The notes under the pieces: model-generated
The model's input: the letters and a program-made list of their open reading frames with translations, nothing else
Database searches by the model: none
What the model was told of the DNA's origin: nothing
Assembly (NCBI RefSeq): GCF_039654945.1
Contig: NW_027361677.1
Span: 5,394,001-5,458,000, forward strand
DNA length: 64,000 nt
Reading direction: 5' to 3'
Source: Dendrobates tinctorius
Lineage: Eukaryota
Translations under genes and position numbers: made by a program
Shown: piece by piece, positions 47,972 to 64,000 of the stretch
Numbering within the stretch: position 1 is the stretch's first letter
Layout of the letters: each line of letters opens with the position of its first letter

Positions 47972-50641
47972 GCCCAAGTTACTCTGATGGGTAACTTGTT
48001 AAGGGTTATTGTGAGGACACAGCATTGTATCTTAATTAACCAGACACCTATTTTTAGTGTTTCTTTCTGGTTGGTCAAGAAAACAGACTGATAAAAGGGT
48101 CATGGAAAAATGATATTTGCTGATATGTTGATTACACATTGTCCAGGCCAGCTAGTTTGTTTGTTGACTTTTAAAATAGAGAGGAAAAACTATGCAAATA
48201 GATTAAATAATCAAATAATGTGACTTGCTCTCATCACCATTCTTCACTTTTACCTGTGAATACTGGAGGAAGGACATTTGTTAGCTATAAAAAGAGGTTA
48301 CATGCCTCCGTATGAGAGAGGCAGATGTTCAGTCAAAACATCCAAAGGACCAGAGACTCTTTACAGGACAGCACCCCAGACATCATGGCTCCATCATGAG
48401 GAACAGAGATTTGACATTCTACAGGATGCCAGCTTAGGGGATCTTGGGCCCGGCTGGAAGAATACAGATTCTGCTCCATTGCCCATCACTGACTCAAGGA
48501 TACATTTGTGAAAGCCAGTAATGGGACCCTGTGGTCGCCTGGCTCCATGGACATGTTCGGAGAAGCCAGGCTGTGACCCTCAACTGGCCTTGTACCTCAA
48601 TGGACTGTCATCTTCCTAAGCTTGTTGTTACCTTCTCTCTGTGCATGTCACAGGTGGGATAGTCGTCTGCGGAAGCTGAAGCCAAGGTTGTGACCTTCCA
48701 GTCAACTGGCGTTGTACCTAAATGTATTGTCACCGTCCTAAGCTTGTCATTACCTCTTCTCTTGCAATAGGTGGTAGTAGTCGGCCCTGGAAGCTCTGAA
48801 GTCAAAGCTGCTCTTGTCCCAGCGAGTCAGCGGCAGGGTGAGACTCTGTAATGTGGACCATCTTGGGTATTTTGCTAGGACTGTGCTACGTGTTATCTGC
48901 CCGTTCGTGGTTCAATAAAGTATTGCTACTCTGTTTTACCCTCACCCTGTTTTGTCTGAGTAGCATTATGCCCACGGTCATGATCATCATTCTACAGTAT
49001 ATGCTCAATATGATGCATGTAGGATACAACTATTCAATATTGTCCAGTTTGGCAGATTTCATGTACTATATATGGGTGTCTAAAAGGAGTTTCCGAAGAT
49101 CTATGCTCCCTAGCTGCAGTTTGTTTAAAAAAAAACAAAAAACCTATAGCTTTAACCCCCTCCCCAGGTCCAGCACTGAGTCTACTGAGTCTCCACCACT
49201 GCTCCCGGTGTCTGTTACTGTCTGCAACACTAACGCCATATCAAAAGCACTGCAGCTAATCAGCTCAACTTAAGCAGAGCCTTTTGAGCACGATAATTGG
49301 CTGCAGCGATGTCGACGTGACGTCAGCAATAACAAGCAGAGGGAGAAGCTGCAGAGACTCAGCGCTGGACCTGAGAAGGGTGAGAAAAGTGCTGTTTGTT
49401 TTTGCAACAAACTGCAGCCAGAGGATGGATTTTTCTAAAATTCCTTTAAGATGCTGAAATGGAGATAAACTAGGGATTATAATTGTGAAAAAACAGTATT
49501 TAACTGAGGTCCAGGGGTGGACATATCATTGGTGCAGCATGTGCAGCCACACAGGGGACCAAGAGGTGAAAGGACTACTTGACTGCAAAAGTGAACTCAT
49601 CGATCTCTGATGTGCACGGAGATTTTTCAGTTTTCCCTTGGCAGATGGTGTTGTGGAGAGATAGGGGTCAGGGAGTTTGAATTGTAATACCAGGCCATAT
49701 TGTTCTTCATCAGATAAGGCAGAGACATTTGGCAGCGGCTTTTTAAACTTTAAAAATATATGAACGCTGGTCCAGTTATAAATATGGGGATGGCGGGAGA
49801 AATAACTTTTTGTCAGATAAGTGCTCAACTAATATGTGTATGTCCAGCTTAAAGGGAATCTGTCAGCAGAATCTACTCTCCTAAGCCATCCATATTGGCA
49901 CGTAGGTCATAGGAAGCTGAACAAAATGATATTTTGATATCTGCGATCTGATGTTTTATTGCAGAGAAATCCACATTTTTCTTAATATGTAAATGAGCTC
50001 TTAAGATCTATGGGCTGGACATAGATCTCCCTGAGAATCTGCCTCCAGAACTTATGGTAAATGAAAGGAGACATTAATAAAGTTAGACATGTAATGACTG
50101 ACAGTCCGCTCTTCTGGTCCTTTTGCCCCATATTAATAGACCAATGCTAATACAGTATATAGCCATGATAACTGAACTATCTTGTTATAGATAGGGCATT
50201 GGGGCCCACGAACTTCAAGTTAGGCTACTGGAAGCAACAAACAAAATGTATAAAAGAGGTCACAGGTACGGGGGTAAATAATTCAGTAATAGTCTCAACA
50301 ATGGTCAAATGTGATTGGTTTGTTTATGCATTGTATACAACACAGAAGTAATTGATCAAAGATGTAGGTGTATACTGGCCAATAATATACTACAATGTTA
50401 GCGGATAAAAGGATGTCTAAGGGGTAACGGCTCTCCTTGTGTAGCAGGTCAAGCTGGCATAAGGAGACTTATAGGCCATGCAATGTTGCTCTGGGAAATT
50501 ATATATGCAAATGGTCTCTTTGAGGAGGAAGAGGATTTGAACTATAGTGACTCCTAATGGAAGTAACCAACCTAAAAGTCAATATCAATCCTTTAACAAG
50601 CCTTGCCACATGACTTAGTGTCTGGCTTTGGTTGTATCCTA

Positions 50642-50686
50642 TTTGCAGACAAGTGTTTCAGGGTGTTTTCCCCTCCTTAGTGCAAA
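50642..50686 (-). ncRNA. Degenerate minimal hammerhead ribozyme
   Basis: TTTGCA CTAAGGA GGGG AAAACA CCCT GAAAC ACTT GTC TGCAAA. Confidence 0.6.
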
Positions 50687-50863
50687 GCAAGAGATTTGGA
50701 TGGATGAGAAGCTTCTGGTAGGATTTTATGTGTTAATGTCTCTCCTTGTGGAGAGTGCCAAGTTGGTGTAGGGTCTTACACCGACTTGGCACTCTTCACA
50801 ATGAGAGACGTTACTCCTTATAGTCTCTTCAGAGGACTCTCATCCAGCCAACTAATATCTTCC

Positions 50864-50908
50864 TTTGCACTGAAGAGGGGCAAACACCCCAAAATATGTG
50901 TCTGTAAA
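50864..50908 (+). ncRNA. Degenerate minimal hammerhead ribozyme
   Basis: TTTGCA CTGAAGA GGGG CAAACA CCCC AAAAT ATGT GTC TGTAAA. Confidence 0.6.
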
Positions 50909-51289
50909 TAGTCTCTGGTTAGACTTGTATCCTGTGGCAAGGCTTGTTAAAGGGTCGATATTGACTTTTAGAGGTAATATGTCTAATAGAAGGCAATAGA
51001 GTTTAAGTCCTCTACCTAAGTTAAGTGGACGCACGTTTTTACATTAGCACTCCACTTCTAGTGTATGTGAGAAATGTCACGTCACATCATGTAGCAGCTA
51101 CGGGTAGGAAACTGTCTAGGGACACTGAGCGTCTCTGCGCTTCTCATGGCGACAAGCATGCAAACAGAAACTGGCCAGATGGGAATGATCATGTACCAGG
51201 CAGCCTACAATCAAGGCAGAGGACAGGGCATTAGGATCTTGCATAGATCTTCCTGTAGAAGTTCTCGGGTAAAGGAAAATAAGGACATG

Positions 51290-52419: not shown

Positions 52420-53900
52420 CATGTTATTCACTGAAATATTACATCCCTGTGATAGGAGATGACAGTTGGTGCTTTTAAAATTCTATGGAGGGGAAGGAGC
52501 TAGAGACGGACATTCCGGTGCAAGTTCACCTGAAAAACAGTTACAGTTCTTCATAGAACTTTATAAGCACCAACTGTCATCTCCTATCTCAGTAATGAGA
52601 AAGTCTGTATCATTAAGATATTACATTACTGAGATAGATGACAGCTGGTGCTTTTAAAATTCTATGGAGAGGGGAGGCGCTAGAGGCAGACACAGACATT
52701 CTGCCGCAAGTTCTCATGAAACGACAGTTACAGTTCTCAATAGAAGTTTCTAAGCACCAACTGTCCTCTCCTATCTCACTAATGAGACAGTCTGTATTCA
52801 CTGAGCTATTACATTACTGAGATAGATGACAGTTGGTGCTTTTAAAATTCTATGGTAGGAGCTAGAGACAGACATTCAACTGCAAGTTCTCCGGCAAGTG
52901 AGGCAATGTTCATACTTTCAGTATTTGGTCAGTATTTTACATCAGTATTTGTAAGTCAACACCAGGAGTGGGACAATCAGAGAAAAAGTATAATAGAAAC
53001 ACGTCACCACTTCTGGATTTATCACCCACTCCTGGTTTTGGCTTACAAATACTGATGTGAAATACTGAATATGTCAATGTGGAATACAGTCCTCCGTAGA
53101 ACTTCATGAGCACCAACTGTCATCTCCTATCTCAGTAATAGGAAAATCTATATTCACTGAAATTTTACCCTTGGTTTGCAAATGGTCAGTCCCGAGGAGA
53201 AAGAACGAAATTTGTCTGACAAGAGATAATGGGACAATTCATCAAAGCTTTTACGCCAGAAGATTGTCATAAAAACTTTGAAAAGTCGTCATTTTTAGTG
53301 GAAAAATTTTGCAACTTTTGGCATTTTCATGCCAGTTTGAGCAAAGCTGGAGAGCAGGAAGAGACGCGGCTATGGCTGCTCGTCAATTTTGTTAAAAATG
53401 CTGGCATTTTGTACTCTAGAAATCCTACTCCAGTCCCAGAATGGAGAATCATGCCACTCAGAAGATGCACCAAAATCTTTAAGTGGTGTGCGCCTCTTGG
53501 TGAATTTGGCACCCAGTAGCCCAGCAAAACTGGCGTAGTGTGAGAATGCACTATGCCAGTCTGAATTAATCAGCCCCAAAGGTTATTGAGTAAACATTTT
53601 AATTTTATTTTTCATAAATCAGTAGGACATGAAAAATAATAAACTTTGGAATAGATTTTATCGGAGAAATCTGCTTCTATCTCTGCAATGATTGATCATT
53701 TATTCTCAATTCACACAAAACAGTGTCTTCAGTAATTCCAGATTTCCCCAGCACTGAGATATGAGATGACAGTTAGTGCTCATAATGTTCTATGGATCTT
53801 GTAGCAGAATGTCTGTTTCTGCTTTCATTTCCTTCCTCCTCTTCATAAAAGATTATAAGCACCAACTGTTATTTCACATCTCATCAATGAGAAAATCTGT
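52420..53900. repeat. Cluster of about four ~170-bp foldback units, interrupted by two Harbinger-like MITEs (~52900-53080, ~53231-53578)
   Basis: GAGATGACAGTTGGTGCT...AGCACCAACTGTCATCTC arms repeated at ~52455, 52630, 52818, 53760. Confidence 0.75.
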
Positions 53901-54615
53901 CTTCACTGAACAAAGATTTTACCCATTAAACGTCAATCAAGGAGGAGAAAAAAAAAAGCAGATTTCTCTGATGAGAAACATTACAAAGTTGCTTATTTTC
54001 ATGTGTAGTTTTGATTTATATAATGAAACATTAAAATGAATGTTAATCTTTAGTAAATGGCAGAGATAACACTTTTCTAAATGATATTCCCAAAATGTTT
54101 TGTTTTTTTTTTTAAATTGATCCATTGCTAAATGGAATCTGTCAGCAGATTTGTGCTATGTAATCTGACAGCAGCATAACGTAGGGACAGAGACCCGGAT
54201 ACCAGCAATGTGTCACTTAGTTTACAGGGTGCAGCAGGTGTGATAGAATCACAGTTTCCTCTGCAGCGGATCTAGCAGGACTCGGAATGCTGAGCTCTGT
54301 ATAGCCCTGCGCACATCACTGATTAGCAGCTTTCTGTGTACACTGTGCATAAAGCTGCAAAGATTCATTTTGTCATAATGGGTTAAACCTTAAAAGCTAA
54401 ATATTTTTCGCACAAGGTACAAATAAGGGCAGGGTGAGGGAGGTGTCCAAAATAATTTCTCAGTGCTGTGACTTCTTCAGGGTCATGCAGAAATAGCCAT
54501 AAAAAGGGAAACAAGCAAATACTGTGACTTTTTATGTTACTATTTTTTATTCATGCTTTCATATTCGGCAGCAAACATTGTAACAATGGGGTATTATTGG
54601 TCGTGGGTTCATCTT

Positions 54616-57600
54616 CTACAGGGTCCTTTTCAGGAAATCCACCAACAAATGATGAGGAAATCCAAAATCCAGCTGGACTATTAAATAACCCTTCAAAAAT
54701 GGAAATAAAAGTTTATTTGAGACAGATTCATGGTATATGATGTACTGACCAACATAACGCATTTACAGCAGTATTTATTTTTTTTCTCGACCTTTCACAA
54801 AAATTTTCACGTTGAGCTGACCATACAACAGAGCAGAATAAAATATACATTTGTAAAAATGTTGCCAATTCATCGCGGAAATATTAGCAATCAAAGTATT
54901 TGACAGCTAATGAGTTAACGTTTATTAAGTTCAAGTGGGTGTTATTAAAGAGTTTTCACTGGTGGGGTGTCTTTATTCTCCCTGTATGACACTGCCCAAT
55001 CATAATCAGGCAGCAACATACAGGAGAGAAAGAACACGCCCCCACAATAGCTCAGAGCAGCTTTTTCAGTGTGTAAGGTGTAATAACAGCCTGCTCCTAT
55101 CTCACTGCAGACACTATTACATTGTGTGTCCAGTTGAACGTGAAACAAATGATGAAAGTGTCTCTGGCTTTTATTTTCCTTGCATATATAATCACCATCC
55201 ATATTTTTTATGTTTATTTATTTTATCCAACTTCAGTCACATCTAAACATTTTTCCCCCCATTCATTATAGCAAGTTAGGACATGTGATCCCTAGTATGA
55301 CAACCAGTTCAGTACATGTACTAATATGTAGACAGGAAGAAACCAGGGATAATGTAGATGGGACCTACTGAAGCTGCAGCACACGGGATACACAGAGACC
55401 CATCTGAGTCAGTGGAGTACGAGTCCACAGACTTTTGATTGGGCCCATGTGTGCTAACGCAGAAGCTGCACTTCACAGCGGTGTTTTGAGTTACCCTTGG
55501 GGGTCTCAGGACATTGACCCCCACCATATCGTATCACATTTCACACTGTATAAAGTATTAAAGGGTACCTATCATTACATGTAATTTTTTAACTGAAACT
55601 GCAATACCAGACAATGTCTCATGGACAAGAGTGGTGCTGTTTATAGGCAAAAAAAGTCCTTTAATAACTTTAATATTACATTGCACTTACCTCATGTGGG
55701 ATTATTTCAGGATTTATGATTTCAAATAAATTTAGGCTTTTACTGTTCATCAGGGATGTCAAAGCCGACTCCAAACCTGCAAAAATACTCAAAAGATGTT
55801 AAAAAATCCACAACACCTCATCCTACAGTAACAGAGACAAGCACCATCTTTGTTCCTACTATTGTGAAATAGTCCCACACATTGTACTCAGTTAATAACA
55901 ATTACTTGTAATAAATATATTAAATATTAATGTATAATGGCAGCCAAAACATTTGTCTGACCGCCTTACTGTCTTCCAACAATAGGACAACTTTTACATG
56001 TTGTCAGTCCAAACTAATAGTAGGTCCAAAACACAGAAGCGGTGCGAATAAATCCATCAGAATTCTTTCAACTTTTTGGCATTTTTTTTATGCCATACAT
56101 TTAATGTCTTGTGCTTTTTTGTCATTTTAAACATCTGTTTTTTTTTCACGTGTCCTCCTGGATGGAGGAAAAGCCCATTGTAAAATGACCATATGCCTTC
56201 AGGGATTTTCCCATTGAAGACATTAGTGGGGTGGTCTCACCTTCTTAAATAGGTAAAATTGATCAGTACTTGTGAAAACAAATCACATTGCAATTTACTT
56301 GTTAAAATTATTCTTCTGCGCTGTAAAGGTAAAGCTGACTCATATTGCAACATTGGAGAGCGAGCGCACAGTTCGGGACATGGGTACCATACTGCTGGTC
56401 CAAGCTGTCAATCTTCCAGAGCTCACCGCTCCTGGCAAGCAGGAAGCTGGGAGTCAGGGGAGCTGTGGGCTCCTGAAGATTGAATGTAAAAACAGCCCCT
56501 TTAATGGCATATCCATAGATGTGTCACGGTTTCTACATTCACTGTGACCAAGGAACGCTGTGAGTGACAGCTCAGCCGCCCTAGGGGATCTGGAGTGTGC
56601 TGGACTGTCGGTTTTGTGAGTGACAGTCCAGGTATCCAATCTTATGCTGGGGTGTGCTGGGTTGGTAATAGTTTGATTGACAGCCCTGCTGCGCACTCTG
56701 GTTTAGTCTGCAGGCATTTCCTCAGGTGCCTCCCATCCCTAATCATTTGCAAGGCATTTAGCTGGCTAGCTGCTAGTAGTCTGTGTCGGTTGTAGATTTG
56801 CTTTAGGTAAGTGTGTGTGCTTGCTCTGTCTCTTGCTGATGACCCTGAGTTTTGTTGTGACTACTTTTTTGGAATTCCCATTCTGCTTTGGAGTACCCTC
56901 CTGGTATTTGACTCCGAACTGTTACCTGACCACGCATTTGTATCACTCCTCAGTACTACGAACCCTCCTGGTATTTTACCCCGGACTGTTACATGACCAT
57001 GCATTTGTATCACCCATCTGTACTACAAGCACTCCTGGTATTTGCCCTGGACTCTTACCTGACCATGCTTTTGTATCACCCCTCTGTGCTATGAGCCCTC
57101 CTGGTATTTGACCCAGGACTGTTACCTGACCATGCTGTTGTATCACCCCTCTGTATTATGAGCCCTCCTGGTATTTGACCCCGAACTGTTGCCTGACCAC
57201 GTTTTTGTATCACCCCTCTGTACTACGAGCCTTCCTGGTATTTGACCCCAGACTGTTACCCGACCATGCTTTTGTATCACACCTCTGTATTACGAGTCCT
57301 CCTGGTATTTGACCCCGAACTGTTGCCTGACCACGCTTTTGTATCACCCCTCTGTACTACAAGCCTTCCCGGTATTTGACCCCGGACTGTTACCTGACCA
57401 CGCTTTTGTATCACCCTCTCTGAACTATGAGCCTTCCTGGTATTTGACCCCTGTTACCTAACCACGCTTTTGTAATACCACCTCTGTTCTACAATCCCTC
57501 CTGACTACTTTCCCTCATATTCTATACTGTACATATGCCATATGTTTTGCCCTGTGCATGTCGTCCAATAATTGCTAATCCAGACTTACGTTCCATTATA

Positions 57601-60600
57601 GCTTGAATCCCAAATTCAGACACCACAGTCTGGAGAAATTGTTTAATCTGTTCTTTGTTCTGTAGGAGAAATATACATTTCTAAGTTATATGCTGATCCA
57701 TACAGTACCAGGTATAACCCTATTCTGTGCTTAATATCCTGAGAACAGATCTGCGGATAATAGAGGGTCCTTGTATAAGTTGCCAAATCGGAATATGGAG
57801 ACTTAGAGAAGGCAAAATTGGGAAAAATTGTATACACATAAACTATCCTCAAAAACGTAGAAAGCTGGCTCTCCAATGCCACCTATAAGAGGGTTATACC
57901 CTATAAGTCAATTATCAACCCATTAATAAACCTTACCAATAGACTTAGCCAAACCAGAGATTTCTCCAAAACTAAAACACACCATCCACAGACAGTGCCA
58001 TGAATGTGGACATCCCGTGGTGTCATAGTCAGTGGTGAACTCTGAGCTTAGTAAATTGCACAATTAACATGAATATTCCATAAGACTCCATTAAGAATCT
58101 GTACAACAGGAAACTCTTAGGGCTTATCATGAGCGTTTTTTAAGTCATTTTCTTTTTTTTTTTACTTTGTTGGGTTTTTTTGTGCCAAAGTCCTCAAAAT
58201 GGGGCACACAGTTCATGAATTTTGCCCTAAATCAAAAATGGTCTTTTTTTTTTTTTACTTTACCATTTTTGTGACTTTTTAGTTTTTTTTTTTGTTTGTT
58301 TGTTTTTTTAAGTGTCAGGGGTCATTTCAATACATTTGCTGCAAATTTTTTTTTAACTTTTCGATAAGTCGCAAATGATGACTCAGGCTGAAATACCTAG
58401 ATACGCTAAGCCAAACTCACAGCAACAAACTTAAAAAAAAGACAACATATGTGAACATATAAAAATTAGACTTAAAGGCGCAAATGGAAGAGGAATTTGA
58501 TGCAAACCAAGAAAAAAAACAAAAAAAACAGATCCACTCTTGCAAATATGAATACAAAAACTTATGAAGTACTGATGCATCCTGTTTCATCATATATCCG
58601 TATTACAGATGTATGAAACACTGCACGCTCATATGAGAGACCTCATTTACACGTAAGTGTTTTTAGTAGTTCATCAGTATTTGTAAGCCAAAACATTAGT
58701 GGCTACAAAACACAGAATATATGTTTTTCTCTGTGGTCTAAGTGATAAAGTTTCTCCTTGTGGAGAGTGACATGCCAAGCCTGGAATGTCAGAGTGAGGA
58801 GACTTAAAAGCCATGCATGCTCCTCTGGGAAATTAAATATGTAAATTGTCTCTTCAGAGAGAACGAAGAATAGAACTCTATAGTGCCAGCTATTGGATGT
58901 AGCAAACCTAAATGTAAATATCGATCCTTCAACGAGAATGGCCATATGACTTAGGATAAAAGCCAAACAAGGATCTCAATTTGCAGACACATGTTTCAGG
59001 GTGTTGCCCCTTGTCAGTGCAAAGTATGAGATCTGATTTGGCTAGGTGAGAGTCTCTGGACTGGGGTCTAAGGCAGAGTTCCCCAACTCCAGTCCTCAAG
59101 TGCCACCAACAGGTCATGTGTTCAGGATTTCCTTAGTATTGCCCAGGTGATGGAATTATTGCCTGTGCAGGTACTCCAATTATCACCTGAGCCATACTAA
59201 GGAAATCCAGAAAACATGAACCATTGGTGGCTCTTGAGGACTGGAGTTGGGGAACACTGGTCTAAGGGATAACGTTTCTTCTTGAGGAGAGTGACATGTC
59301 AAGCCTGGCATGTCAAAGTGAGGAGACTTAAAAGCCATGCATGCTCCTCTGGGAAATTATATATGCAAATTGTCTCTTCAGAGAAGCAGAAGACTTGAAC
59401 TCCAGTGCCAACTATTAGAAGCAGCGATCCTAAAAGTGAATATCGACCCTTCAACTTGACATGTCACTCTCCACAAGGAGAAATGTTACAAATTGGACTG
59501 CAGTCCAGAGCCTCTCACCTAGCCAAATCAGTCCTCATACTTTGCACCGACGAGAAGCAACATCTCGAAACACTGTTTGCAAATTGAGATTTTGGTTTGG
59601 CTTTTATTGTAAGTCATTGTCATGATGTGACTATAGAGTAACTAGGGCTGTGGCGTGGCCCTTAATTTAGTCCCTCAAGCAAAAGGGGCCCTAGGCTCTC
59701 CCTGTCCCCAGGTTTACCCCTGATGGTGGGGATGCCTGGGTCACGTGCCTCGCTCAACTACTGCACCAAACTAATCTGATCTCCTCCACCACCCAAGGAA
59801 TAGGGGGGCAGAAGTGAAAGAGTTAACACAGAAAAGACAGACGCCCCGTCACACAGTCCTCACACAAGAATAAAAAAAACACTAAGGTACAAGAATAAGA
59901 AGGCTGGGAGGCAGAGAAACTACATGAAACAACAAAGGGGAAGGAAAAGGTTTTCAACAAAAACTGCACACAACACTCACAGAGCAACCACCAGAAATAC
60001 CTGGATATGTCCACCTCTCCAGACCATTGGTAAGACAAGCTATAGCTGGCACTATCTGAATAGTCCAGGACATATATAGGGGAAGAGAAGAAATAAGTAT
60101 TTCTCCCACAGCTTGTGACCAAGCAGTATTACAACCTAACCCAGCAGAGATTTAACTCTTGGTAACTTGTCTTTGCTTCAACGCCAAAGTCTCCCTGCAC
60201 TGATTACAGCCATTAGTGAAGTTACAAGGAAGAGTGCCAGAACCTATAGATTCCCCAAACCCTGATGCCGCCATCACAGCTGGCGATGTTTGGAAAAACC
60301 TCCTTGTGACAGTCATATTGCAAGGCTCGTTAGAGTCGATATGGACTTTAAGGATAATTGCTTCCAATAGGTGGCGCTAGAGTTCAAGTCTTCTTCCTGT
60401 CTAGTTTTTTACCATACGTTTTTTTCGCAATTGACCTGTGAAAATTGTCATAGGCCTTTTTTACACCCATGTATTTCATATATCTTTAATACAGATCCAC
60501 AGTAGTCAAATGTGCTTATTATATTAAGGAAGCCTTGGTCTCCTTTCAGCTGAATGTATTATTACAGGTTGGTAGTGCAGATCAGCAATCTGGACGTAGA

Positions 60601-63600
60601 ATTGAACAGGATGCAATTTTTTTTTGCATTAGTATTTGGATTTATGACTATTATTTTCTATTATATAATATCTAATATATTATGTACTTACCATAGAAAC
60701 CGACAGGGAACTTCTGACATTTTTAATAGAAACTCTGATACCAAGAAAAAAAAAAAAAAAAGGAAAAGGGATATTAAAGTTTGCATTAAACCATCTAATT
60801 TTAAAAAATGAATAAAATTAATAAAAACACTTGATGTCAATACTCAGAAAGCGTAAATGCGAAATCAGGGGTGACTAAAGCATTAAAAACTGCACCACAT
60901 ATCACTATATGGTGTCGGTGCTTTGTTTTCCTTATATACAGCTCTATTCCCATGATTCCGTAGGGATTTTCCAATTTTTGGAAAACTTTTGTCTCCCAGC
61001 TGCAGTTTATTTTATAAAAAAGCAAAAAAATGGTGCTTTACCCTCCCAGTGTATATGATTGTCTGCAGTGCTACAGCGCAGCAGCTTAATCGGTGAGCTC
61101 AGCAGCTCTGGCGGCACAAGCTGTTCAGAGCCGCTGAGCTTTGATGACTTTTGAAGTCCCAGGAAAATGTCACTTAGCAGTCCATATAGCAGCTATATGT
61201 CCCACAATTCTATTGGCATCTAGTAATAAAAATTTGTAAAGGACCACGTTAGATACATTTTTGTATGGAAATATTGCGGTCATTTTGCGGCCCACGAATT
61301 GGGTACGGTATTTGAAATTGAACTCACAGAGGATTAGACGGGTGCAACTTCAGTTTTTTGTCTCCATACGAGGCCTGGACGGCGGTAACAGTTTCCTGCA
61401 ATAAAAAGAAACAAGTTTTATTTTCTTCCGCCGCAATATTACTTCTTGGCAAGAGCACGATATTTTACATATCTCTGCCGACCCCGCCATACACAGGCCA
61501 AACGCGCCTTGTGGGGGCCTCACTCCTCTGCAAAAGGTTCTGTTTCATTTTTTGGTTATTGTATCCTGCCTGCTTATTCGTTAATGATCCCCGGATATTT
61601 TTCTGCTATACTTATTGCTTATTGGTGACTGCAAACTGAAAGCCTCATCCAAAATTACATTACATCTTTCTGGGGGTCAACACTAAAGAGCAGGGAGATT
61701 CCTAGTACTCTGCTCTCAAATTGTGGCATGGAGCGAAAAAGTAACACAATCTAACTGTAAAATGTAGAGATGGTGTCTCATTTGATTGTAGAGTTGCATG
61801 AAAGGATAAGGAAATATGCAATTTACTTTGATGGTACAGTAAAATATGGATTCTTAAAGAAAAAACGTGACATGTGCACATACCATTACATGAAATATTT
61901 TATAATGCTACACTCATTACAACTGGAGAAATAGGGATTTTTGTGTACTCACCGAAAAATCCTTTTCTCTGAGCCAATCATTGGGGGACACAGGACCTTG
62001 GGTAAGCTGTACTCAGCCTCTGGAAGAAAGCTTAACTCCTTCTCTGCGCGTATGGGCTGCAGGTGCAGAGAAGGCGTATAATATGCGCAGAGAAGGGGGT
62101 TAAGCTTTCTTCCAGAGGCTGAATACAGCTTACCCAAGGTCCTGTGTCCCCCAATGAGGTGTAAGAGAAAGGAATTGTTTTCTAGAAGTCTTCTATCAGA
62201 TGACTTGAGTGTCCTCTTATGGGGTTCAGTCCTCCTTATACTCACCGTTTCAAAATATAAATCAGATGCAGAAGTGGTGCTTATGTGGACCGCGACAGAA
62301 GAGGTGACCATCGTGCCCTTTGGTGTAATTTTGATTCTCGGGGCTGTGAGACTCCACACTTTTGCAGAGATATCGCTAGCTGCATGTTTGTGGAGAATCT
62401 AAGAGATAAAATAAGCACATTTACTGAGTTATATTTCTGGATATCGAACAAAAAAGACATCCCGGGGTGTCTTTCAGCAGGGCACCCCTGCTGCCTGCCA
62501 GTTTATGGTGGTGCTGGGCAGCAGATCTGATGACCCACTTGAAATTGTATAGTGCAAACCTCCCTATATGTGCACTAGCAGTGACTTATTCCATATTATT
62601 CCTTATTCCTAGAAAGGTAGGAAATTTCAAGCATTCAGTTATGACCATTTCTATTTCGCAGTGAAATGGCTGCATAAATTGGACCGAGATCAGAACGCAA
62701 TGCACGGACTGGCCGGCGGCTCTCCCGACTTGAATGTGACAGTCAGGTATGGACTGGGACTGAAATTCAGCCCTGGCTTTTGCAATCACACAGGCCCATG
62801 CTGTCCCCATCTCCAAGCACCAGATGGGATATATTACTAATATTACCCTGGATGGAGGAAAGGAAGATTTACTACAAGATCAATATTTCTAATAATACCC
62901 GTGACTTGCTGGGGTATGTGACGGAGTCAGCGACTTTGTGTCACAACTTTTAACAATATGGGTGTCTTGAGAACATCGATTCTGTTAACAACGTAGCAGA
63001 CAAGGCATCCCATGACCAGACAGGCCCTTCTGGCATTTGCCAGAATTGCCAGATGGCCAGTCCGGCACTGGTGACAGTTTCAAATATGTCTATGTGGCTG
63101 TCAAGCTCAGGTCAGGAGAGCCGCTGGCCAGTCCGTGCACTGCCTTACGATCTTAGTCCAGTTTATATGGCCGCCTGACTGCACCCTCAGTGTAATATAC
63201 TGTAGATGGGTACCAGAAAGTTATTAAAAAAAACTAAAAAAAGCCTTTTCTTGTCATTGTTTTCCAAACTTTTTGGTTTATGAGTAAACTTTTTAAGGCT
63301 AGTTTCACAACTTATTTATGGTACAAATATAGACCACAGTTTCACGAACCAGCCACACGTCTCCTGACCTGCACTCATCATCCTCGTAGGCATACAGTAT
63401 ATGAGGCTCATATATGTCTATGAAGATGGACGGTTTCCGGTCAGGAGACACGCGACCGGTCCCAGAAAATGCGATCCATGAATGTCGGACGTGTGAAACT
63501 GGCCTTAACATGACTCTACAATAAGACATTTCTATGCCTGCAAAGAAAAGACATCCACTTGTTTAGGTTGTCATACACATTGGATAACTGTCATGTAAAT

Positions 63601-63987
63601 GCTTGCCTTGCAATGATGGTGGCCTTCCATTATTAGCTCCATATCTTCATTTTAGGTCTATGTAAATGCTTTCATGCCCCCCACCCACCAAAACAAAAAG
63701 TATTGACTAACCAGAAAAATTATGTCTATTTGTAAGGTTTCAGGGCATAGAGGCTCCTTCATCAGGCAAGTTTACACATTAATGACTGAGACATTACTTT
63801 AGGCCTATATTTGGTTAAATACTAAGACGAGATCCCCTTTTAAGCTCATATTTGAACATATGATGTCCAGCTCTGTGGAATATGACATGTACTTGTAGAA
63901 ATATGTAGCATGATTATTGCGCATACTTGTAGTTACCTCTCGTAGGATTTCCTGATGGGACGCCTCGTTATCATTCTGAAGGATATC
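54616..63987 (-). CDS. CETP: Cholesteryl ester transfer protein, last seven coding exons: 63987-63937, 62398-62246, 61395-61328, 60734-60692, 57659-57590, 55776-55691, 54690-54616
   Basis: Spliced C-terminus ...VTAVQASYGDKKL...[71 protein letters not shown] parallels recalled human ...[53 protein letters not shown]; all GT-AG, phases compatible; AATAAA at 54546-54551 (-). Confidence 0.95.
56895..57503. repeat. ~67-bp minisatellite, about 9 copies, possibly within an LTR-like element starting TGTCACGG at 56522
   Basis: CCTGGTATTTGACCC..ACTGTTACCTGACCA.GC.TTTGTATCACCCCTCTGT repeated every ~67 bp. Confidence 0.93.
58980..59023 (-). ncRNA. Minimal hammerhead ribozyme with one core substitution
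   Basis: TTTGCA CTGACAA GGGG CAACA CCCT GAAAC ATGT GTC TGCAAA. Confidence 0.7.
59074..59259. mobile_element. hAT MITE
   Basis: TIRs CAGAGTTCCCCAACTCCAGTCCTCAAG / CTTGAGGACTGGAGTTGGGGAACACTG; perfect TSD GTCTAAGG. Confidence 0.93.
59541..59583 (+). ncRNA. Degenerate minimal hammerhead ribozyme
   Basis: TTTGCA CCGACGA GAAG CAACA TCTC GAAAC ACT GTT TGCAAA. Confidence 0.55.
59618..60311. mobile_element. Solo LTR
   Basis: TGTCATGA...TTGTGACA termini; 5-bp TSD GTCAT; host repeat resumes across it. Confidence 0.88.
61929..62170 (-). mobile_element. Miniature DIRS derivative made only of the two termini
   Basis: Arms CATTGGGGGACACAGGACCTTGGGTAAGCTG...TCTCTGCGC (61979-62053) and the reverse complement (62082-62156), with DIRS-type asymmetric outer ends. 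Confidence 0.85.
63296..63504. mobile_element. Harbinger-type MITE
   Basis: GGCTAGTTTCACA ... GTGTGAAACTGGCC with TAA/TTA flanks. Confidence 0.65.
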
Positions 63988-64000
63988 CTGAATACAAAAA

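Follow-up and report, generated by a model that had tools for sequence, protein, structure and literature searches.

Two decayed insertions of a 329-nucleotide hammerhead repeat in Dendrobates tinctorius and the Penelope-like insertion signature of its family

The stretch of DNA considered here, referred to as the window, comprises 64,000 nucleotides of the Dendrobates tinctorius genome (assembly GCF_039654945.1, contig NW_027361677.1, positions 5,394,001 to 5,458,000, forward strand). It holds two separate two-armed loci of like design, at 50416-51017 (insertion 1) and 58731-60402 (insertion 2), in both of which partial tandems of a hammerhead-bearing repeat lie on opposite strands and abut 5' to 5'. 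Their layout was mapped by BLAST with a natural old unit and a natural young unit, together with a repeat finder; positions in the old reference unit are labelled o and those in the young reference unit m. The hammerhead motifs were scored with R1, a covariance model built from 27 aligned motif-region copies on other contigs, with the hammerhead structure imposed and the window copies excluded. Sites A and B, described further below, are the two places at which the 3' ends of the family fall. The components of the two loci are as follows.

50416-50773, minus strand: minus arm of insertion 1, family positions about 249-329 and then 1-286; outer end of the site A type; holds hammerhead copy 4
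50639-50691 (R1 match; core 50642-50686), minus strand: hammerhead copy 4, R1 34.5 bits
50777-51017, plus strand: plus arm of insertion 1, family positions about 249-329 and then 1-164; holds hammerhead copy 3
50842-50928 (R1 match; core 50864-50908), plus strand: hammerhead copy 3, R1 40.1 bits
58731-59073, minus strand: outer unit of the minus arm of insertion 2, family positions 1-292 plus the last 45 nt or so of the upstream unit
58958-59047 (core 58980-59023), minus strand: hammerhead copy 1 with extended helix I, R1 94.7 bits, E 1.7e-22
59260-59455, minus strand: inner unit of the minus arm of insertion 2, family positions 93-296; 5'-truncated
59456-59617, plus strand: plus arm of insertion 2, inverted, family positions 244-329 and then 1-80; holds hammerhead copy 2
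59517-59605 (core 59541-59583), plus strand: hammerhead copy 2 with extended helix I, R1 82.3 bits, E 3.5e-19
60321-60402, plus strand: end of the plus arm of insertion 2, family positions 85-168; outer 3' end near site B

Insertion 1 is a near-palindrome, both arms of which begin at about unit position 249. For insertion 2, the two minus-strand segments (58731-59073 and 59260-59455) amount to about 1.6 tandem units and the plus arm to about 0.75 unit, the arms meeting 5' to 5' at about 59455. Segment 58731-59073 has an outer (3') end of the site A type near position 290 and is 82-86% identical to dispersed genome copies, while the repeat finder gives 90% identity between the inner unit and 58734-58878. 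The first-pass annotation, made from the letters of this DNA, had described a tandem family of about 330 bp. Its period is confirmed at 329 bp; the arrangement in the window, consisting of two two-armed insertions and no tidy array, is different from the one described. Tandem Repeats Finder calls no array of about 330 bp in the window, because the units are few, diverged and interrupted. On the repeat itself, the window contains no open reading frame (ORF) of at least 90 amino acids; the sole such frame in the span (59823-60122) belongs to an inserted repeat of about 700 bp.

The four hammerhead motifs, at the positions and on the strands proposed by the first-pass annotation, are confirmed both by direct inspection of the sequence and by R1. 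The R1 scan covered all 64 kb of the window with filters off, and its best four matches are exactly these four sites; the remaining matches, at 25 bits or below, are unrelated hairpins. Each copy has its own lesions. Copy 1 carries G8 to A in the CUGANGA box together with C11.1 to U; copy 2 shows U4 to C and damage to helix II, and has lost the GUC cleavage triplet to a deletion of 2 nt; copy 3 has G12 to A, C15.2 to U and a 1-nt insertion in loop 2; copy 4 combines G5 to A with C11.1 to U. The changes at C11.1 and G12 are CpG transitions. The anticipated pattern, a distinct lesion per copy with several of CpG origin, is therefore observed, each copy being hit at another invariant core base. 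None of the four window copies retains an intact type I core (CUGANGA ... GAAA ... UH), and since every one of them has a core-base lesion, none is expected to cleave: judged by their sequence, all four ribozyme copies should be dead.

Aligned genome copies give the older-copy majority motif TTTGCA-CTGATGA-GGGG-CAACA-CCC(C/T)-GAAAC-AC(T)GT-GTC-TGCAAA, to which the consensus proposed earlier from the four window copies is nearly equal; only loop III departs from it, with 5 nt in most copies (ACTGT or ACAGT) and the 4-nt ACGT of that consensus in a minority. Searching of the genome assembly (6.36 Gb, 830 contigs) with the window unit as query returned 5,309 first-look candidates, and the scored copies lie on many contigs with 82-86% identity to the window unit, paralogues apart. 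A 33-nt core pattern with two free loop positions and at most one mismatch has 2,661 matches in the genome, compared to 0 for the reversed pattern. Most of these matches come from a young subfamily with 96-100% identity among its copies, and a descriptor scan finds complete hammerheads in the better-kept natural copies. At one natural tandem, L006, three identical motifs stand at 2103, 2432 and 2761, exactly 329 bp apart.

The family unit has a 329-bp period, a GC content of 46% and one motif, with up to 4.4 units per arm, which agrees with the earlier expectation of one motif per non-coding monomer of about 310-330 bp and sets its length in intact tandems at 329 bp. The majorities of the old and young subfamilies differ at 32 of 275 columns (11.6%); only one of these falls among the 45 hammerhead columns, in loop 2. 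Taken together, the 2,661 versus 0 core matches, the spread over many contigs and the target duplications described below bear out the proposal of a dispersed non-coding hammerhead family. Direct observations on the assembly cover the motif and the family as well as the number of copies and the architecture of the insertions.

In the family motif, a helix I of 6 bp is combined with CUGAUGA, a helix II of 4 bp closed by a 5-nt loop, GAAA, the GUC site and a very weak helix III; past a small internal loop, helix I resumes for 14 further pairs. Following the definitions of PMC4209133, its sequence corresponds to a canonical metazoan type I hammerhead. The designation as "minimal" in the first-pass annotation is not sustained, as helices of 6 bp and 4 bp with an extended helix I are those of the canonical form; the minimal hammerhead (min-HHR) of Penelope-like elements has a long helix II and a short helix I (PMC4209133). 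In the 27-pair hammerhead structure 93.5% of cells pair, compared to 14-52% when the partners are slid. As regards folding, helix III alone gives 0 kcal/mol and no fold, while two ACAC(N)GUGU stretches pair with each other at -8.4 to -11.7 kcal/mol. In a single motif, the active fold (-7.8 kcal/mol) loses to an inactive alternative (-13.6 kcal/mol). For the newt and axolotl motifs the requirement for a dimer has been shown experimentally (PMC7229834), and by analogy the calculated folding energies would fit such a requirement here.

Direct repeats of 11-15 bp are found at the edges of 10 out of 19 independent young or fairly young insertions, versus about 5 bp in control pairings, and the targets are AT-rich in several cases. 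The 5' ends of the young insertions are scattered, as expected for variable 5' truncation. Their 3' ends, after trimming of the duplications, fall instead at two places, m284-286 (site A) and m183-190 (site B), about 95 nt apart and one per arm; the 3' ends of old copies lie at o284-292 and o177-189. About two thirds of the young insertions are two-armed. The order is constant: minus then plus, with the 5' ends abutting, in all nine close opposite-strand pairs of the core-pattern list and in both window loci. One A end is paired with one B end in 9 out of 12 young and 6 out of 7 old two-armed insertions (15/19 outside the window), and A/A or B/B pairs were never seen. Both window loci follow this scheme approximately, one end being of the site A type and the other (o164 and o168) stopping about 10-20 nt before site B.

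These features can be compared directly with those of Penelope-like elements, whose insertions are described as truncated at the 5' end and partly in tandem, with an inverted 5'-truncated copy and with a tail on one end only (PMC8557442). In the only in vitro study of a Penelope-like enzyme, both strands were cleaved and extended, and the tail corresponded to the interval between two internal sites at which reverse transcription began (PMC11167929). The insertion mode of the family carries this Penelope-like signature. Potential sources of the enzyme are abundant in the genome, where a Pfam GIY-YIG search gives 5,686 first-look candidates and many Penelope-like ORFs are present, including open frames of 754-855 amino acids and dense clusters on contigs C39 and C345 (dozens within about 3 Mb). 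Beside one Penelope-like ORF on contig C31 (L064:1345-1396), 52 nt of 7SL/Alu-like sequence were noted, matching the mir-1268 model at 30.8 bits (E 0.049); this stretch is not taken for human DNA.

Collectively, it is very probable that the window contains two old, dead insertions of a 329-nt non-coding element of the non-LTR (long terminal repeat) retrozyme kind, mobilised by a Penelope-like route. In the proposed mechanism, multimeric family transcripts would be produced, in which adjacent ribozymes, joined by base-pairing of their near-palindromic helix III stretches ACAC(N)GUGU, would cleave after GUC and free 329-nt monomers that may be circularised. A Penelope-like reverse transcriptase/GIY-YIG endonuclease would then integrate DNA copies of the family RNA: it would nick both target strands and, on each of them, start reverse transcription from one of two internal sites separated by about 95 nt. 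Such dual-strand internal priming would account for the features observed, namely partial tandems, a second arm that is inverted, 5'-truncated and joined 5' to 5', a tail on one side and target duplications of 11-15 bp. Since their insertion, the window copies have lost their ribozymes by point mutation, partly through CpG decay; they were also hit by a miniature inverted-repeat transposable element (MITE) and another repeat, and were duplicated, with more than 10 kb of surroundings, to three other places.

A more specific version of this mechanism, with two coordinated primings per insertion, one strand at about 285 and the other at about 190, and a tail of about 95 nt on exactly one arm, is put forward tentatively, as a possibility not quite reaching an even chance. 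Two adjacent conserved hairpins are located in the tail, at about m233-268 (window 58750-58801 and 59274-59325), one of which has a 6-bp stem and a GCAA (or ACAA) tetraloop; they cause spurious Rfam "whalefall-1" matches. These hairpins could be a structure for binding or starting of the reverse transcriptase. Regarding the template, neighbouring units are identical or nearly so in some arms (0 differences in 286 nt in the minus arm of L050; 2 in 329 nt in L006). In other cases they differ, with 25 differences between units within an arm of L041 versus 4 across its arms, and 5-8 in the plus arm of L050. Since units within an arm are sometimes identical and sometimes different, the template could be a multimeric transcript or a circle, the sample being small; L041 and L050 give hints of heterogeneous multimeric templates.

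Several results weigh against the reading of the window insertions as Penelope-mobilised retrozymes. The target duplications of the window insertions themselves are not recoverable (5-6 bp, no better than controls), which is ascribed to their age. Covariation is weak: three pairs are changed on both sides, a count reached by 41 of 500 shuffles, and the covariation score is 0.080 versus 0.071; the family is too uniform to tell. The Rfam hammerhead models have no match in the window at the gathering threshold, nor when E values up to 10 are admitted, and none at E up to 1 in the L006 and L048 loci, where intact copies are present. As intact copies are missed as well, the silence of Rfam is uninformative on the motif, and its models appear blind to the weak-helix-III form; the identification consequently rests on the motif descriptor and on the likeness to amphibian motifs in the literature. 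The cleavage step, the action as a dimer, the circles and the involvement of a Penelope-like enzyme are inferred; in Xenopus eight out of nine predicted retrozyme dimers remained uncleaved in vitro (bioRxiv 10.64898/2026.07.22.740005).

The same holds for the sequencing data, the partner element and the length of the tail. In small runs (with the same species label and a related one), word depth is high over the young dimer and absent over the unique flanks. These run data are assembled contigs of guessed RNA status, which cannot show RNA ends or circles; low-coverage DNA would give a similar depth pattern, so no conclusion on transcription is drawn. An autonomous partner was not found: 30 GIY-YIG loci with 1.5-kb flanks, out of the 5,686 candidates, showed neither similarity to the unit nor a hammerhead when searched by BLAST, an nhmmer profile, two descriptor scans and R1. 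Likewise, about 50 loci taken with 1.5-kb flanks have no ORF between their units. As no ORF with unit-like ends was found, the enzyme is assigned from the architecture alone. Finally, the tail of about 95 nt in the frog family is longer than the 30-40 nt of described Penelope-like elements.

Taking these points into account, the family could be explained differently, most seriously by rolling-circle reverse transcription of a circular monomer RNA, a route proposed for retrozymes in general, in which the tandem units would be laps around the circle and neither a linear multimer nor dual-strand priming would be needed. Identical or near-identical units in some arms (the L050 minus arm and L006), the terminal redundancy of the arms and the circles shown for axolotl retrozymes (PMC7229834) are consistent with this explanation. 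The excess of within-arm over cross-arm differences in L041 (25 vs 4) speaks against it, although the sample is small and later change possible, as does the use of unprocessed RNA by the Penelope-like enzyme in vitro (PMC11167929). Laps alone leave unexplained the two fixed 3' ends, one per arm, and the constant 5'-to-5' inversion. Rolling-circle copying is considered unlikely, though it retains appreciable weight. Another explanation regards the units as pseudo-LTRs, solo or paired, of an autonomous Penelope-like element, the window then containing the broken ends of a coding retrotransposon. The insertion architecture is indeed Penelope-like (PMC8557442), pseudo-LTRs of Penelope-like elements carry hammerheads (PMC4209133) and the genome is rich in such ORFs. 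Nevertheless, same-strand hammerheads lie 326-332 bp (or multiples thereof) apart with no ORF between them in about 50 loci, and profile and covariance searches of 30 Penelope-like 3' regions detected nothing related. Furthermore, the ribozyme has the canonical retrozyme form and not the min-HHR typical of metazoan Penelope-like elements (PMC4209133). This explanation is held to be improbable.

It might also be supposed that no mobile element is involved and that an ordinary satellite was spread by unequal crossing-over and segmental duplication, with the motif as a passive, non-catalytic relic. The death of the window copies and their duplication within a block of more than 10 kb would suit this case, and so would the weak covariation and the failure of most Xenopus constructs to cleave in vitro (bioRxiv 10.64898/2026.07.22.740005). 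A satellite of this kind is, however, difficult to reconcile with copies dispersed over many contigs in short arrays of at most 4.4 units per arm, or with 11-15-bp target duplications, defined 3' ends and variable 5' truncation. In addition, thousands of copies retain every core base, and the subfamily differences avoid the core and the helices. A purely passive satellite is thus very improbable. Concerning the two-armed shape itself, twin priming on a single RNA was tried as a model and rejected, as the inner ends of site-A arms are not clustered at site B. In L1 twin priming, as in the frog family, both strands prime and opposite arms are joined at their 5' ends. The arms of L1 are adjacent, non-overlapping parts of the RNA, in contrast to the frog family, where the inner ends show no relation to the site at which the other arm starts; moreover, L1 starts at the poly(A) tail, whereas both frog arms start at fixed internal sites.

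Retrozyme mobilisation by a Penelope-like route, the preferred reading, can be placed among known systems. The class of non-LTR retrozymes, including those of amphibians (axolotl and others), was defined by Cervera and de la Pena (PMC7229834) as non-coding tandem repeats of about 170-400 bp with one type I hammerhead per unit, lacking LTRs, a primer-binding site (PBS) or a polypurine tract (PPT), with GC below 50% and target duplications longer than 4 bp when present. Linear and circular RNAs of unit length are a further mark of the class. The frog family fits the structural part of this definition with its 329 bp, GC of 46% and duplications of 11-15 bp, PBS and PPT not having been searched for. 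Retrozymes have also been reported in all seven amphibians sampled by Li, Clavereau and Pollet, including three Xenopus species (bioRxiv 10.64898/2026.07.22.740005); a Penelope-like origin is argued there from pseudo-LTR similarity, mobilisation is left open and the arrays are partly ascribed to unequal crossover. Consequently, the suggestion of the first-pass annotation that this family may not be described was too hopeful as far as the kind of element is concerned, since amphibian retrozymes are published (PMC7229834; bioRxiv 10.64898/2026.07.22.740005). What may be new is the family itself and the argument for Penelope-like mobilisation from insertion architecture.

A close likeness is seen to newt satellite 2 (Epstein and Gall 1987) and axolotl Rtz330 and Rtz353, where each unit is again non-coding, measures about 330 nt and carries a single type I hammerhead; this likeness is judged by size and ribozyme build, from the axolotl constructs printed in PMC7229834. 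The salamander retrozymes also share with the frog family a 6-bp helix I, a 4-bp helix II, a 5-nt loop 2, the need of a second copy for helix III, GC below 50% and target duplications longer than 4 bp. The GAAAC-ACGU-GU stretch of the axolotl motifs occurs as a minority variant in the frog family. Differences are found in loop 2 (CAGUA or CAACA in the frog family, CACUA in Ax353) and in helix I (UUUGCA/UGCAAA in the frog family, CCUCA/UGGGG in axolotl). Furthermore, the mostly 5-nt loop III of the frog family gives the dimer helix a central A.A or U.U mismatch, unlike in salamanders. Copy number is in the thousands in the frog family, compared to about 10^5 in salamanders, and RNA circles have been shown for axolotl retrozymes (PMC7229834), whereas the frog family is known here from genomic sequence.

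The Xenopus elements REP4, Penelope-6_XT-like and Neptune-like are likewise short, tandem or monomeric dispersed units with a type I hammerhead; amphibian retrozyme units average 316 bp in the same study, where dependence on Penelope-like elements is also proposed (bioRxiv 10.64898/2026.07.22.740005). None of 16 published Xenopus primer targets matches the family, the Penelope-like loci or the window, so the family is probably distinct from those elements. The Xenopus link to Penelope-like elements is one of pseudo-LTR similarity; in the frog family no similar pseudo-LTR was found and the link is one of architecture. With Penelope-like elements themselves the family has in common 5' truncation, partial tandems, an inverted 5'-truncated abutting copy, one-ended extension, two internal start sites and, in several cases, AT-rich targets. 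These elements are, however, 3-4 kb long and contain an ORF, in contrast to 329 nt and no ORF in the frog family, and their min-HHR with its long helix II differs from the canonical frog ribozyme with its loop-bearing helix I.

A further resemblance concerns putative promoter motifs. Young units contain an octamer, ATTTGCAT, at m177-184, followed by a Staf/ZNF143-like TTCCCAGAGGAGCATTGCGG at m196-215, corresponding to about 59335-59372 in the window. From ATTTGCAT and the TTCCCAGA-type site, the distance to the next ribozyme downstream is about 115-150 nt, and in Ax353 an octamer and a TTCCCAGA-type motif are seen at a similar distance when compared by eye. There is no fixed difference between old and young subfamilies within ATTTGCAT or m196-209. 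In decayed copies the octamer and the Staf-like site do not stand out by their conservation (ranks 36 and 120 of 278), and no proximal sequence element (PSE) was established in the family unit. A promoter of the small nuclear RNA (snRNA) type, with an octamer or distal sequence element (DSE) and a PSE, has been reported for newt satellite 2, and by analogy the octamer and Staf-like pair recalls it.

Two later insertions, both outside the ribozyme family, interrupt the arms of insertion 2.

59074-59259, no strand assigned: hairpin MITE of 186 bp, inserted in the minus arm
59618-60320, no strand assigned: unrelated dispersed non-coding repeat of about 700 bp, inserted in the plus arm

The inverted arms of the MITE are 78 nt long and 88% complementary, and its ends are CAGAG...CACTG. 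It is flanked by the 8-bp duplication GTCTAAGG (59066-59073 and 59260-59267); the flanking direct repeat, 8-9 bp in length, has P=0.007 against random pairings, and the 8-bp duplication suggests a MITE of the hAT superfamily. Its hairpin yields spurious miRNA-like Rfam matches (mir-616 and mir-5892). The repeat of about 700 bp has dozens of copies at 66-85% on other contigs (query positions 19-713), and the hammerhead family resumes after it at 60321; it may be flanked by AGTCAT.

At least 53500-64000 of the window is present in three further copies with 93-98% identity, on C5 (about 25.49-25.50 Mb), C67 (about 8.37-8.39 Mb) and C48 (about 1.425-1.438 Mb), the last of which is without window 59119-61033. 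Either a segmental duplication with four copies or the homeologous regions of a polyploid genome could underlie this pattern. Since the surrounding region of more than 10 kb was duplicated together with the dead repeats, these pre-date the duplication. Two other tandem repeats of the window are unrelated to the hammerhead family: a 67-bp array at 56896-57503 (9 copies, 85% match) and a 187-bp tandem at 52425-52889 (2.6 copies of hairpin-forming units), the units of which give weak false R1 matches.

For the window itself, the copies are dead repeats of little consequence, which should be masked as a retrozyme family rather than annotated as genes or active ribozymes. What is of interest is the insertion signature of the whole family more than this locus. 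The mobilisation of animal retrozymes is an open question (bioRxiv 10.64898/2026.07.22.740005), and with thousands of intact, recent copies and clean target duplications this genome offers a good data set for addressing it. Penelope-like machinery working on both DNA strands is suggested by the two fixed 3' ends, by the inversion, which is always 5' to 5', and by the tail on one side only; sites A and B provide two mapped candidate start sites of reverse transcription. If the version with two coordinated primings holds generally, it would count against rolling-circle copying of circles followed by unequal crossover, and it would reveal a strand asymmetry in the choice of start site that was not seen in the in vitro Penelope-like system. 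It would then also be the first structural evidence, independent of sequence similarity, for mobilisation of animal hammerhead retrozymes by the Penelope-like dual-strand, internally initiated mechanism.

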